This document shows positions 2,166-46,828 of a stretch of 64,000 nt of DNA, piece after piece. The stretch is taken from the sequence record KY555145.1. One strand, 5' to 3'. A model generated the notes under the pieces. The model searched no databases, was not told the DNA's origin, and was given only the letters and a program-made list of their open reading frames with translations. Position 1 is the first letter of the stretch; each line of letters begins with the position of its first letter. The position numbers and the translations under genes were made by a program.

Positions 2166-5100
2166 ATGGACAGCGAAGCCCTCAAGCTTAAGATCGATTC
2201 CTCGCAAGCGCGTACCGACCTGGACGCGCTTGCGAAGTCCCTCGACCGCGCGTCCAAGGCCGCCGGCTCCATGCAGTCGAACCTCGCCAAGGGGGTCGAC
2301 AAGTCCAACGAGGCCCTGTCGCGCGGGGCCAAGAACATCGAGAAGTTCGCCCGCGTCACGGCGGAACTCTCGAAGGTCAAGCTGTCCGGCGACCCGGCCA
2401 AGCAACTCACCGAATTCGCTAACGCCGTCTCGGCCGTGGCGCGCGCGCGCGAGATCAGCGCCGCCAAGCTCAATGGCCTGTCGAAGTTCGTCCAGGTCGG
2501 CGCGGCTATCTCCAAGCTGCGGTTCACCGGCGAGTCCTTCTCGGGCCTGCACGCCCTGACCCAGGCGATGGACGAGGCCGGCCGCGCCCGCGCCGTCAGC
2601 GCCGCCAAGCTCAAGTCGTTCGTCGACTACATGGAAGTCGCCGCGCGCGCCTCGCGCCTGCGCTTCTCCTCCCAGACCTCCGAAGCCCTGAAGTCCCTGG
2701 CCAGCGCCATGGACGCGGTCGCGCGCTCGCGCGTGGTCAGCCCTCAGAAGCTGGCGGCCTTCAAGGAACTCTTCGCCACCCTGGCCACCGCCAAGGGCGT
2801 GCCGAACGCCGGCGCGATCGCCCGCGACCTCGACACCATCGCCGGGGCCGCCTCGCGCGCCGCCAAGGCCATGGCGGAACTCAAGGGCGCGCGCTCGGGC
2901 ATGGGCTCGATGCGCGCCTCGGGCGGCTCCGGAGGCGGCGGAGGCATCGCTTCGGGCGCGTCCTCCAACGTCAAGCGCTTCAACGAGGAAGTCGCCAAGG
3001 TCAAGGGCCATACCGACAACGCCGCCAAGGGCGTCGACGGCCTGGGCAAGGGCCTGGGTTTCCTGACCGGCCGCTTCAACCTGTCTTATCAGGCGGGTAC
3101 GCTGTTCTCGGCGCTGTTCTCGTCCTTCACCTTCGGCCAACTGGTCAAGGGCATCTACGACACCACGGTCTCGTTCCAGAAGCTGAACAAGGCCATGCTG
3201 TTCGTCACCGGCACCTATGCCGGCGCGCACAAGGCGACCCAGGACTTCATCGACATCTCGGTGCAACTGGGCGCGTCCGTCGAAGACAACGCCGACGCCT
3301 ATTCGCGCTTCGCCATCTCGTCGGCCGCCGCCGGCCTGAAGCTGAACGACGTCAACAAAATCTACCGGTCCACCCAACTTGCCCTGACCGCCGTCGGCGC
3401 CAACAGCGAGCAGGTCGGCTATGCCTTCTACGGCCTGTCGCAGGCCATGGCGAAGGGCAAGATTTCGTCCGAAGAATTCAACCGTCAGATCGGCGAGCAA
3501 ATCCCCGGCAACGCCCAGGCGGGCGCGCGCGCCCTGTCCAAGCTGACCGGGCAGCAGAAGTCGGTCGCCGACCTCTTTGACGAGATGCGCAAGGGCACGC
3601 TCCAGTCCGCGCCGTTCCTGAAGGCCTGGGCCGACGAGATCAACCGCATGTTCGCCCCGCTGCTGCCGGAGGCCGAAAAGCGTCCTGACTTCCAACTGGG
3701 CAAGCTGAAGACCGCCTTCTCCCTCTGGAAGGCGGAAGTGGGCCGGTCGCAGTTCATCGGCGCCCTGACCACCCAGTTCAAGAAGCTCTCGGACATGTTG
3801 ATCGTGGTCGACGGGGATCACCAAGTCCTGACCGAGCGCGGGCGCAAGCTTGCCGAGTCGTTCGGCAAGGGACTGGCCCAGGCCGTCAACATCCTCGGCA
3901 ACGCCCTGGCGTGGCTGGCGGACAACCTCGACAAGGTCGTCGCCGTGATCAAGGTGGTTGGCGCCCTGGCGATCGGCAACGAGTTCGCCAAGTGGGGCCG
4001 GCAGGTCGCGGCCTTCGCCGACAACATGCTGGGCGTCAAGCGGGCGATCGAGGAAGTCTCGGCCGCCGAGACCGCCGCCTCGGGCAAGCGCGCGGTGACC
4101 TCCAAGGCCGGGGCGGTCAACGCCGTCTCGACCGTGGCGTCCGATCGCATGGCGATGGCGACCAACCGCACCCGTAACGCGGTGATGGGCGGCACCTTCG
4201 TCGCCAATGCGGTGGCTCCGGCCGTGCGTCAGTCGCCGCAGTTCTCGCAACTCTCCTACCTGACCGGCAACCCGACCTCGCCCACGCGGGGCGCGCCGAC
4301 GTTCGGCCGTCGCCAGCCCTATACCGGCACCATGACCTTCGACGCGCGCCCGACGGGCCGGGCCGGCGGCATGGGCGGCCTGTTCGCCGCCATGGGCTCG
4401 GGCGCGGCGACCGCCGCCACCGGAGCCTTCACGGGCCTGCGCAAGGCGCTCAACGTCCTGCCCGGCGTCGCCCTGGCGGGGGCCGTGGCCCTGGCGATCT
4501 TCGGCAACAGCATCACCAAGCTGAACGACAAGGCCGTCTCGTACAACAACATCGCCGCCGGCGCCCTGGGCACGGTGGGCGACGAGATCGGCAACGGCAT
4601 GACCGGGCTGATCAACGGCATCCGGGGCCTGTTCGGCGCCGAGCAGAAGGCCCAGGGCACCGGCGACTGGCTGGTGGACCTCTCGGCGACGTTGATCGTC
4701 TTCGGTAAGGCCATCTTCACCCTGGCGACCACGCTCGGTAAAATCCTCGGCACGCTGATGGCCAATGTCATCATCCCGTGGATCGAATTGGGTCAGAAGC
4801 TGGCGTCGGGCGATCTGAAGGGCGCGGCGGCCAAGTCCGGTGAAATCCTCATGGGTCAACTGGGCAAGGGTAACCGCGAGCGCTGGGCCGAACTGGGCAA
4901 GGAACTGGGCAAGGACTGGGGCAAGGCCCTGGACTACGCGGGCACGCGCCAGTCGATCGTCAACGGCGCCCTGAAGTCGGCGGCCGGCGACAGCGCCACC
5001 CCGCAGGGTGCCTCCGACAAATTGACCGAGGCGGCCCTGGCGCAGATGAAGGCCGCCGACCAGCAGGCCCTCGCCGCCGCCGACCTGAAGGACGCCACGG

Positions 5101-44687: not shown

Positions 44688-45560
44688 CCGACGGGCTGAG
44701 ACTACACCCATCAGCAATCCCGCTTCGAGGATTATTCCCCAGGTGCGACCCCAGGTATTCCCTCGACGTCCACCAGACCCCTTGCGGTAGTCCAGTCCGA
44801 GATCATCGCCGCCGTTCTTGCGCACCCCGAAGGGATTGCGGGTCTGGCGTTTGACCCATCATGGCGAACTACTCGACAGTTCCTTCCCCGCTGGGCTTGC
44901 GACCCACTCACCGGCGCTAACCGGCTGACGAAGCTCTTCCTATCGACACCTCGCGGGCTTGCGACCCTTGAGATGACTCCGTTACCCGAGGGCCGGAGCA
45001 TTTGGCGACTTACGTCCGCCACTGGACCAGTCTTTGCGTTTTTCATCGAAGCGGGGATTGAACCCGCGACCGACAGCTAGGACGGCTGTTGCACTACCAC
45101 TGTGCTATTCGCAAACCCACCAAGACGTGCTGGTCCAGTTGTTCCCAGAGCTTTTGACCCCAGAAATGCAACACGCCTCATATCTTTCGCCTTGCGGGCT
45201 ACTCGACTGCTCTTCAGGACCCCGTCTCCCCCGACCTTTCGGCCAGGATGCCCAGCACCCCTCGAACTGAAGCAAAGCTCTTCACCGCGAAGTGTCGAAC
45301 CCTGCAACCCAAACGGTTATCCGTACTCCCTAGACACGCTTGCACGGGATAGTCCGCTTGCGACGGACTGGCGGTTAAAGCCTCGGAGTTACCCCGGCCC
45401 CGCCTTGTCTCCCACGGTCTTCAGGTCTATCCCCTTTTGCAAGAGGCGGCCAGCTTCCCAGCCCGGACCCGTCGGCTTCCTCTGTCCTCTTGCGAGGTCG
45501 GGCGGCCTATGGGAGACCGTCCCTGTCACCCCGTCGCCGGGGCTTTCGTCAGAAGCGACG
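44688..45560 (-). ncRNA. GOLLD-like giant ornate RNA (~870 nt)
   Basis: On - strand: GAGTAGCCCGCAAGGCGAAAGATATGAGGCGTGTTGCATT...CAAAAG, a second GAGTAGTT, many GCAA/GAAA tetraloops and 3' GGGTGTAGTCTCAGCCC, all resembling recalled GOLLD consensus; flanked by promoter and terminator. Confidence 0.75.
45043..45114 (-). pseudogene. tRNA-like element embedded in GOLLD-like RNA
   Basis: Intact D arm (GCAC/GTGC), anticodon stem (ACAGC/GCTGT, loop CGTCCTA) and T arm (GCGGG-TTCAATC-CCCGC), but only a 4-bp acceptor stem and no CCA. Confidence 0.75.
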
Positions 45561-45565
45561 ATGAC

Positions 45566-45594
45566 GTTCTAGCGACAGCCCACGTCGTCGTCAA
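45566..45594 (-). promoter_or_regulatory. Sigma73-type promoter TTGACG-N15-GCTAGAAC for GOLLD-like RNA
   Basis: Near-perfect Caulobacter housekeeping consensus on - strand. Confidence 0.8.
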
Positions 45595-45650
45595 CGACTT
45601 TTTACATCCCGGCGCGGAATTTTTTCGACAGTCGTGGATGACGACAGTGC

Positions 45651-45679
45651 TTGACATTCTCGTAGACCCATGCTAGGTG
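45651..45679 (+). promoter_or_regulatory. Promoter TTGACA-N15-GCTAGGTG for tmRNA
   Basis: Divergent from the GOLLD promoter. Confidence 0.7.
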
Positions 45680-45681
45680 TC

Positions 45682-46058
45682 GAAAATCGTTGTAATTCGG
45701 ACAACGGAACTGGCGGCAAGACAGGGGTGCGAATCCCCTCGCCTCCACCATCGACGCCCGGCGCTGGGAGTACGCGACTCCTGGGCAGGGAGTGTTACCC
45801 TGGCGGGCTGCGGCCCGAGCCAAAGGTAGCCGGGCGTCGTTGATGGGGGCGACTAGCTTTCGATTGGCGCTCGGGACTGAAAGACGCAACGGTGGGTGAC
45901 CTCCACATCGGCTTGCCGGTGATCGGGTCAGGCAACAGTAAATGTCGCCGACAATGACAACGACGTCGTGGCTTTCGCCTCGGCTCGTGAAGCCATCGCC
46001 GCCTAATAAGCGGTAGAGGAGCCCGCCGGGAGCTTGGCAACAGAATCCCGGCAACCCC
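45682..46058 (+). ncRNA. ssrA: Circularly permuted two-piece tmRNA
   Basis: Acceptor piece ends AGGGG-TGCGAAT-CCCCT-CGCCTCC-A-CCA (45750); coding piece starts GGGGGCG (45845), giving a G3.U70 pair; resume context AACAGTAAATGTC-GCC; tag frame 45947-46006 encodes ADNDNDVVAFASAREAIAA-stop-stop; 3' GGCAACAGAA motif. Confidence 0.92.
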
Positions 46059-46187
46059 CTTTCGCAGGCGGGAACACCAACAGGCGATCTGTCGGGCGAC
46101 CGATTTCCGATCCGTGTTCCCGTCTTCGAAAGGTGGTCAGGCCTACCCTCTTGGTGTGCTATCCAAGGGTCTGGCCACTTTACAGAA

Positions 46188-46266
46188 CGCGGGGTAGAGG
46201 AGTCCGGTTGTCCTCGTCTGGCTCATAACCAGGAGATCGTGGGTTCAAATCCCACTCCCGCTCCCA
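46188..46266 (+). tRNA. tRNA-Met(CAT), initiator-like
   Basis: CGCGGGG acceptor with C1xU72 mismatch, loop CTCATAA, T arm GTGGG-TTCAAAT-CCCAC, CCA end. Confidence 0.88.
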
Positions 46267-46637: not shown

Positions 46638-46722
46638 GGTACGGTGGCTCGACAGGTAAGGCATCGGCCTCATAAGCCGAGGGTTCGTCCCAATCCTGGT
46701 TCAAATCCAGGTCGTACCTCCA
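46638..46722 (+). tRNA. tRNA(CAT), Met or Ile2, with long variable arm
   Basis: Acceptor GGTACGG/TCGTACC, U73-CCA, TCGGC-CTCATAA-GCCGA, 14-nt variable region GGG-TTCGT-CCC-AAT, T arm CCTGG-TTCAAAT-CCAGG. Confidence 0.88.
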
Positions 46723-46795: not shown

Positions 46796-46828
46796 AAGCC
46801 CCCGGAGCCTCGCTTCGGGGGCTTTTCA
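46796..46828. terminator. Intrinsic terminator closing the RNA island
   Basis: AAGCCCCCGGAG...CTTCGGGGGCTTTT. Confidence 0.85.

Follow-up and report, generated by a model that had tools for sequence, protein, structure and literature searches.

The stretch of sequence record KY555145.1 that was analyzed here, which is 64,000 nt long and is called the window in the following, contains a gene for a permuted, two-piece transfer-messenger RNA (tmRNA, encoded by ssrA) at about 45686-46058. The gene was located with ARAGORN, with Rfam and by direct reading of the sequence, and all elements that a preliminary description of positions 45682-46058 had listed were present, with coordinates that fitted well. 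With a probability of about 0.8, this phage copy of ssrA is genuine and functional and has the permuted form that is typical of alphaproteobacteria; its likely benefit is extra rescue capacity. The window is that of Caulobacter phages Ccr10, Ccr2 and Ccr29 of the phiCbK group. Positions 45600-46150 of the window were 100% identical to all three and 99.5% identical to phiCbK, and, by offset, the window corresponds to positions about 56993-120992 of Ccr10. The Ccr10-type phages are large phiCbK-like siphophages (Dolichocephalovirinae, Shapirovirus).

Detection and conserved structure of the tmRNA gene

ARAGORN called a permuted tmRNA ("tmRNA*") at 45658-46097 on the plus strand, with the tag VADNDNDVVAFASAREAIAA followed by two stop codons. 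This program had been named in the preliminary description as a check, and its call agreed with the description. With Rfam 15, the model RF04321 (tmRNA_permuted) was matched at 45688-46006 from end to end (model positions 1-213), with a score of 71.9 bits compared to a gathering score of 47 and an E-value of 7e-12. The best match of the same clan that was shown for the window in the Rfam E-value search was beta_tmRNA with 36 bits. The order of acceptor piece, intervening segment and coding piece, the G3.U70 pair, the encoded CCA and the two stop codons could also be read directly in the sequence, as had been described. Judged by its sequence, the RNA is alpha-like in architecture, yet far diverged. 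A protein gene was considered and rejected. The open reading frames of the region, e.g., 45602-46054 on the minus strand, were read as spurious because the conservation follows the pattern of a paired RNA, and the "hypothetical protein" that is annotated over the region in phage BL64 is also best read as spurious.

Homologues of the tmRNA region were found in 28 Caulobacter phage records and in one Brevundimonas phage record. The RF04321 scores were 82-90 bits in RBC63, CcrBL10, Rogue, Colossus and Bajun. With the alpha_tmRNA model, Colossus and Bajun reached 53.5 and 57.4 bits, respectively, and the hosts 209-234 bits. In CcrBL9, CcrSC, CcrPW, an uncultured viral contig and Kabachok the tmRNA was found by ARAGORN or by direct reading. 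For RBC63, CcrBL10, Rogue, Colossus and Kabachok the ARAGORN output was negative, though Rfam or direct reading revealed a tmRNA in each of them, and thus the absence of an ARAGORN call is not evidence for the absence of the gene. In practice, the new Rfam model finds the tmRNA genes of relatives where ARAGORN fails. The gene order tRNA-Cys, tmRNA, tRNA-Met was present in all sampled Dolichocephalovirinae, and this context was seen in Shapirovirus, Poindextervirus, Colossusvirus, Bertelyvirus and Brevundimonas phages.

The predicted structure was maintained by compensatory changes. When the hosts were added to a full-length MAFFT alignment, P2, pseudoknot 1 (PK1) and the 3' part were out of register, and shorter alignments were used instead. 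For the tRNA-like domain, P2 and PK1 stem 1 in seven phage sequences, 97.4% of the alignment cells were paired and nine pairs were changed on both sides. None of 500 shuffles was as good, and controls with slid partners reached 44-55%. In the same seven sequences P2a was paired to 100% and P2c/d to 95%, with compensatory changes in both. The T-arm and the acceptor stem were compared in 11 sequences, including two hosts. Here pairing was 100%, G3.U70 was invariant, the acceptor pair 5:68 alternated between GC and CG, and two of the five T-stem pairs covaried, the outer one of the stem taking four pair types. For PK1 as a whole, 95.5% of the cells were paired and eight of the 14 pairs were changed on both sides, values that again were not reached by any of 500 shuffles. 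Its stem 2 was paired to 100%, with three of five pairs changed on both sides, and occurred in the forms UGACC/GGUCA (window), UGGCU/AGCCA (Bajun) and UGAUC/GAUCA (uncultured contig). In addition, the acceptor stem, the T-arm and P2 were recovered when the precursor and the two-piece dimer were folded at minimum free energy (MFE) without constraints.

Within the phiCbK cluster the mature pieces were invariant save for one tag codon, and the changes were found in the intervening segment and downstream of 46053. The gene of Karma was identical to the window over 45685-46190. This substitution pattern is that expected of a functional RNA and not of a relic. The intervening segment was 81-118 nt long in eight of 11 phage copies, and 36 and 51 nt long in Kabachok and in the uncultured virus genome (UViG) L122. 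In the hosts it was 29-30 nt long, and thus the segment of the window is about three times longer. It has a predicted MFE of -55 kcal/mol (z-score -3.8), is folded as a closed multi-hairpin structure, and ends in a 5-nt leader, UUGAU, ahead of G1. Its closing stem is formed by other sequences in Colossus, Bajun and the Rogue group, and its interior was nearly identical between the phiCbK and Rogue groups.

Both ends of the gene were placed by comparison with relatives. A promoter-like site predicts a start of transcription at about 45686. TTGACA and a hexamer starting with TA 17-18 nt further on were found at the same distance upstream in those phage homologues whose flank was read, except for CcrBL9. 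A consensus promoter scanner did not call the plus-strand site, because its -10 element has no T at position 6, and called a weak minus-strand site instead. Homology to the host and the divergence of phage BL57, which differs completely from 46054 onward, put the 3' end of the coding piece at about 46053-46058. The model of the host ssrA stops just past a shared CAACAGAAUCCC hairpin. The loop of the PK2-like hairpin contains the motif CAACAGAA, which is common to the window tmRNA and host ssrA. A possible PK2 pseudoknot between GAGC (46019-46022) and GCUU (46032-46035) was read by eye only; its counterpart in Colossus is GCGC/GCGU. The features are summarized in Table 1.

Table 1. Positions of the tmRNA elements and of the downstream features in the window
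Feature	Position	Strand	Details
Promoter-like site	45651-45679	+	-35 TTGACA 45651-45656, 17-nt spacer, -10 TAGGTG 45674-45679
Acceptor piece	45686-45750	+	From Rfam alignment, covariation and unconstrained MFE fold
P2a, P2c, P2d, 3' strands	45688-45692, 45713-45715, 45717-45719	+	In acceptor piece
T-arm	45723-45727 / 45735-45739	+	AGGGG-UGCGAAU-CCCCU; 5-bp stem, 7-nt loop UGCGAAU
Acceptor 3' strand	45740-45746	+	CGCCUCC; U70 = 45744
Discriminator A73	45747	+	
Encoded CCA	45748-45750	+	
Intervening segment	45751-45844	+	94 nt, presumably excised
Closing stem of intervening segment	45752-45762 with 45829-45839	+	11 bp; encloses four small hairpins
Coding piece	45845-46058	+	Order: acceptor 5' strand, D-loop analogue, P2, PK1, tag frame, P5, PK2-like hairpin
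Acceptor 5' strand	45845-45851	+	GGGGGCG; G3 = 45847; 7-bp stem with CGCCUCC
D-loop analogue	45852-45863	+	
P2d, P2c, P2a, 5' strands	45864-45866, 45868-45870, 45887-45891	+	
Pseudoknot PK1	45892-45930	+	Just upstream of resume codon
PK1 stem 1	45892-45895 with 45903-45906		
PK1 stem 2	45897-45901 with 45926-45930		UGACC with GGUCA
Hairpin inserted between PK1 stems	45907-45920	+	
Tag reading frame	45944-46009	+	GUC 45944-45946 plus 19 codons to 46003, UAA UAA 46004-46009
P5-like hairpin	45999-46013	+	CCGC/GCGG; both stop codons in loop
PK2-like element	46019-46052	+	Hairpin GCCGGGA/UCCCGGC, 46025-46031 with 46046-46052
Long 3' hairpin	46056-46136	+	Apical motif UCUGUCGG, internal loop CA/UU
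tRNA-Met (CAU)	46188-46266	+	Initiator-like; tRNA-fMet in CcrBL10 annotation
Second tRNA-Met (CAU)	46638-46722	+	Followed by terminator-like hairpin 46808-46820

Proteolysis tag, resume codon and relation to the host SsrA

The C-terminal Ala-Ala of ssrA tags directs degradation by ClpXP, and this ending, to which the preliminary description had pointed, is retained in the phage tag. In the window the frame ends with GCC AUC GCC GCC UAA UAA. The tag was VADNDNDVVAFASAREAIAA in the window, Karma, Swift and Magneto, VAANDNDVVAFASAREAIAA in phiCbK and BL57, VASNDNDVVAYASAREAIAA in CcrBL10, VAANDNAPFAVREAIAA in Rogue, RBC63, Bajun and one uncultured contig, VNDNDAPVMEQLLAA in Colossus, VNDNDAPVMEQRLAA in CcrPW, VNAANDNDVVVSTMTSVKLAA in CcrBL9 and CcrSC, and VEAHNDNFAAGERVLLAA in Kabachok. 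All length differences were multiples of 3, and every copy had an xAA end followed by a stop, with the stops in the P5 loop. All phage tags retained an NDN block and a hydrophobic-Ala-Ala end. In 55 genome loci of Caulobacter and Brevundimonas the host tag read ANDNFAEEFAVAA, and its full form is AANDNFAEEFAVAA (PMC9393093). The phage tags differ from it, as had been proposed with the term private degradation tag. The tag is thus private to the phage lineage, but NDN and xAA are ordinary elements, and their presence suggests ordinary handling by ClpXP/SspB, not a re-routing.

The resume codon is probably GUC (Val) and not GCC, at roughly 65:35, which would lead to the 21-residue tag (A)VADNDNDVVAFASAREAIAA. 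GUC is more likely because of its context and because of the alignment of the tags. The resume codon stands directly after (U/C)AAAU in about 45 distinct tmRNAs of the permuted form. In the phage family GUC is preceded by (U/C/G)AAAU (UAAAU in the window) and in Kabachok by CAACU. Furthermore, VNDND of Colossus and CcrPW aligns with ANDNF of the host. The frame and the rest of the tag had been described correctly. The start had been placed at GCC 45947, which would yield the window tag without Val; this part was not upheld, as both the (U/C)AAAU context and ARAGORN favor GUC.

The closest known system is the two-piece SsrA of Caulobacter crescentus (RF01849/RF04321), an alpha-type permuted tmRNA reportedly described by Keiler, Shapiro and Williams in 2000. 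Both RNAs have the same order of acceptor piece, intervening segment and coding piece. They share the acceptor stem with G3.U70, A73 and the encoded CCA, a T-loop of the type UGCGA(A/U)U, the D-loop analogue, P2, PK1, and (U/C)AAAU ahead of the resume codon. NDN near the start of the tag, the xAA end, a stop in the P5 loop and the CAACAGAA loop motif are also common to both. In contrast, the host SsrA reached 234 bits with the alpha_tmRNA model and the window copy stayed below its threshold, and BLAST aligned the T-arm region only. The intervening segment is 94 nt long and highly structured in the window and 29 nt long in the host. The window RNA has a hairpin inserted in PK1, no 5' leader hairpin and no P2b, its resume codon is probably GUC (Val) instead of GCG (Ala), its tag comprises 20 encoded residues instead of 13 and is followed by two stop codons, and an extra conserved hairpin lies past its 3' end.

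The T-arm stretch that the phage copies share with host ssrA is 32-41 nt long and has about 90% identity. Because the match is restricted to this short stretch and the alpha_tmRNA scores of the phages are low, the phage tmRNA is not a recent capture. The fixed genomic position in at least five phage genera speaks for long vertical inheritance. The positions of the tRNA-like domain that host alanyl-tRNA synthetase (AlaRS) and SmpB would need belong to the invariant columns and are identical to the host. The sequence of E. coli SmpB, verified against Pfam PF01668 (194 bits), was used as a query for smpB. With tblastn, 68 phage records were matched, none of them from Caulobacter or Brevundimonas phages, and the best match in the window had an E-value of 0.07. 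The earlier statement that no smpB lies in the window was therefore confirmed, and it can be extended to the Caulobacter and Brevundimonas phage records. The phage RNA thus presumably works with SmpB, AlaRS and EF-Tu of the host.

One observation concerns the host gene itself. In Caulobacter vibrioides OR37 (locus L055, ssrA at 4413-4775), at least two further copies of the final approximately 75 nt of ssrA (GCCUGCCAACAGAAUCCCUCCACUUUCC...) lie downstream of the gene. These repeats look like scars of genomic islands that integrated into the tmRNA gene.

Proposed function and alternative explanations

The phage tmRNA would have a sigma-70-type promoter of its own (TTGACA at 45651) and would probably share one transcript with the two downstream tRNA-Met genes. 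Host RNase P would cut 5' of G45845, host 3'-processing enzymes would trim to the CCA at 45750, and the structured intervening segment of 94 nt would thereby be removed. This would leave an acceptor piece of about 65 nt and a coding piece of about 210 nt, held together by the acceptor stem and P2. The RNA would be charged by host AlaRS via G3.U70 and A73, and host SmpB and EF-Tu would bring it to ribosomes that are stalled on broken mRNAs in the infected cell. Resumption at GUC 45944 would add (A)VADNDNDVVAFASAREAIAA, and the -AIAA end would probably route the product to host ClpXP. The likely benefit would be extra rescue capacity during the takeover of a host with cell-cycle-limited tmRNA.

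If this is true, the host, in which tmRNA is cleared at a set stage of the cell cycle, receives a separate ribosome-rescue RNA from the infecting phiCbK-like phage. The purpose of phage tmRNAs has been in question since the first mycobacteriophage examples. The ssrA deletion of Caulobacter is viable, and Caulobacter and phiCbK offer developed genetics, an established ClpXP/SspB biochemistry and public RNA-seq data of a phiCbK infection (GEO GSE241057, mapped to JX100813.1; PMC10688885). Therefore, the system is a convenient place to ask this question.

Several points weigh against a functional rescue RNA. Its support consists of the sequence and the predicted structure, and expression, processing into two pieces, alanylation and tagging are predictions. 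The preliminary description had named the Rfam alpha_tmRNA model as a check, and here it did not hold: the window gave no match to RF01849 at the gathering threshold of 50 bits, and thus the general permuted model was used. With this model the window copy passed the threshold, but scored lower than its relatives. The TTGACA promoter was inferred from conservation only, and the 3' end of the coding piece, being homology-based, is approximate. The choice between GUC and GCC as resume codon is uncertain; the frame is the same either way. Since no phage copy of smpB was found, the RNA is assumed to depend on the SmpB of the host. In the Rfam alignment the model helix P2b carried non-canonical marks and is not formed in the window. 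Lastly, most members of the family show covariation in a rival local hairpin as well (45688-45692 paired with 45702-45706). It was considered in place of P2a and rejected: it covaries in CcrPW and L122 and is broken in Colossus, and P2a is intact in all seven sequences and was preferred over the local hairpin in the MFE fold.

An alternative that had been proposed in the preliminary description, but has a rather low probability, is a specialised tmRNA. Its longer tag would alter the handling by SspB or proteases, or the RNA would escape the transcription control and the cell-cycle-timed decay by RNase R to which host tmRNA is subject; for example, the conserved hairpin on the 3' side could shield the free end of the coding piece from this decay. 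The tag of 21 residues is indeed longer than the 14 residues of the host, and the extra ones lie between the NDN block and the xAA end. The -35 element is near-consensus, unlike the upstream region of host ssrA, and in the phage family, but not in host ssrA, the coding piece is followed by a covarying hairpin of about 80 nt. In addition, the tmRNA of Caulobacter is a substrate of RNase R, for which the split into two pieces is considered to open a site of entry (PMC12320835). However, both the altered routing and the escape from cell-cycle control are speculative. NDN and AIAA, both elements of ordinary handling, were kept, and IAA and LAA ends are common among other permuted tmRNAs. The tags in the phage family range from 15 to 21 encoded residues, and thus no particular length appears to be selected. 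BL57 replaces the sequence of the 3' hairpin entirely, and the retention of this hairpin on the mature RNA is hypothetical. A more explicit version of the escape, in which the retained 3' hairpin blocks RNase R at the additional 3' end of a two-piece tmRNA and rescue persists in infected cells once host tmRNA has been cleared at the G1-S transition, and in which the unusual Val codon and the long spacer between NDN and AIAA could tune the delivery to SspB/ClpXP, is somewhat more doubtful still.

It is improbable that the RNA is a decoy or an inhibitor that soaks up host SmpB or occupies stalled ribosomes and thereby shuts down trans-translation of the host. A phage without smpB does have to compete for host SmpB with its RNA, and there is a reported precedent in the RNA of mycobacteriophage DS6A, which consists of the tRNA-like domain only (Hudson et al. 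2014, PMC4131195). Yet a decoy needs no tag frame, and here the frame, the xAA end, the stops, PK1 and the resume context are conserved across genera, and within the phiCbK cluster the mature coding piece does not vary save for the one tag codon. A decoy of the DS6A type that lacks a tag frame was rejected, as a frame of 20 codons is conserved across the family.

Least probable is a passenger without selected function, captured with the tRNA cluster and drifting or left over as an attP-like remnant of integration into ssrA: tmRNA genes are common integration sites, as the repeated ssrA 3' ends at host locus L055 illustrate, and the gene lies inside a tRNA island, but it is complete and not a 3' fragment, has only about 35-40 nt in common with host ssrA, shows compensatory changes that preserve its structure in at least five phage genera, at one fixed genomic position, and has no integrase annotated next to it in phiCbK. 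An ssrA fragment at an attP site or island border was rejected on the same grounds (full length, a host match of 32-41 nt, no integrase annotated nearby in phiCbK).

Known phage tmRNAs, the 3' flank and the neighboring GOLLD RNA

The presence of this gene and its class are already on record, and the discovery is therefore modest. In an ARAGORN survey of 18,146 phage genomes, 53 unique two-piece tmRNAs were found, and phiCbK, Karma, Magneto, CcrSC, CcrBL9 and CcrPW are listed as "Permuted" in Table S1 (Buchholz et al. 2022, PMC9004378). The permuted tmRNAs of the OM43 phage Melnitz, of pelagimyophages and of cyanophages are likewise phage-borne two-piece RNAs without a phage smpB and are mostly from aquatic phages (PMC9004378). 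Genes of the Melnitz type have a glutamine riboswitch in the 3' domain, whereas none was found in the window with Rfam. The mycobacteriophages of the Bxz1 group and Bacillus phage G also carry ssrA in large, tRNA-rich genomes and use host SmpB, but their tmRNAs are one-piece with standard gene order (PMC4131195). DS6A has no tag frame and is a reported tmRNA inhibitor, in contrast to the complete, conserved tag frame of the window gene (PMC4131195).

Gill et al. (2012, PMC3556154) found only tRNAs as RNAs in these phages with Rfam, and Hudson et al. (2014, PMC4131195) listed ssrA only for mycobacteriophages and Bacillus phages. In the tmRNA database of 2025, 79 sequences are from phages. A tmRNA annotation is absent from all 28 records of Caulobacter phages in GenBank, the region being called a hypothetical protein in BL64. 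In the searchable papers, the tmRNA genes of Caulobacter phages were only listed, not described, and no functional work was found. These papers do not mention the conserved hairpin on the 3' side or the probable resume codon for Val, nor do they compare structures and tags within the subfamily.

Permuted tmRNAs were also observed in other viral sequences. Rhodobacter phage RcSimone-Hastad (63 kb) contains an unannotated, complete permuted tmRNA with the tag ANDNVRMDAQALAA. In addition, at least 120 IMG/VR contigs (L062-L181) contain the T-arm and acceptor motif of alpha-type permuted tmRNAs, with dozens of tags, most of which start with ANDN and end with ALAA; in this set phage genes and host flanks of proviruses are unsorted.

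The long hairpin downstream of the coding piece (46056-46136) had 21 consensus pairs in an RNAalifold analysis of six phages, 11 of them compensatory, and the region 45985-46187 folded with a z-score of -5.66. The hairpin had no match in Rfam and no counterpart in host ssrA. Its role may be that of a processing site of the RNase III type or of a protective 3' cap. A second hairpin, at 46139-46178, lies between it and the first tRNA-Met gene. The latter and the tmRNA are probably transcribed together. Between the tmRNA promoter and 46808, the plus strand showed no terminator-like site, and thus transcription probably proceeds through both tRNA-Met genes up to the terminator-like hairpin listed in Table 1.

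On the other side of the tmRNA gene, about 500 nt away and in divergent orientation, a full-length GOLLD RNA (RF02032) was found at 44693-45179 on the minus strand, with 165.3 bits compared to a threshold of 150 and an E-value of 1.4e-44. A tRNA is embedded in its variable region. Apart from this tRNA, GOLLD is unannotated in the phiCbK RefSeq record and in the matched phage records. Within the phiCbK cluster, 18 records have GOLLD in conserved form, and weak similarity was seen in Mesorhizobium phage Cp1R7A-A1 and Sinorhizobium phage Phosso. A literature search revealed no paper that links GOLLD with Caulobacter phages. The approximately 470 nt between the 5' end of GOLLD and the tmRNA promoter (45180-45650) have no annotated feature in phiCbK. 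Rogue-type phages do not have this stretch; their tRNA-Cys lies about 285 nt from the tmRNA, and they have no GOLLD or tRNA-Gly.

The tRNA embedded in GOLLD (45042-45115 on the minus strand of the window; 393-466 in Karma locus L188) was identical over 91 nt between the window and Karma, save for five consecutive bases of the anticodon loop. These are GUCCU in the window (anticodon UCC, Gly) and UCUUA in Karma (anticodon CUU, Lys). In GenBank the tRNA is annotated as tRNA-Gly in phiCbK, Ccr10, Ccr2, Ccr29, Ccr32, Ccr34, S2L and BL57, and as tRNA-Lys in Karma, Magneto, Swift, Ccr5 and RBC57. At the sequence level, the difference is a clean swap of the anticodon loop on an otherwise invariant tRNA.

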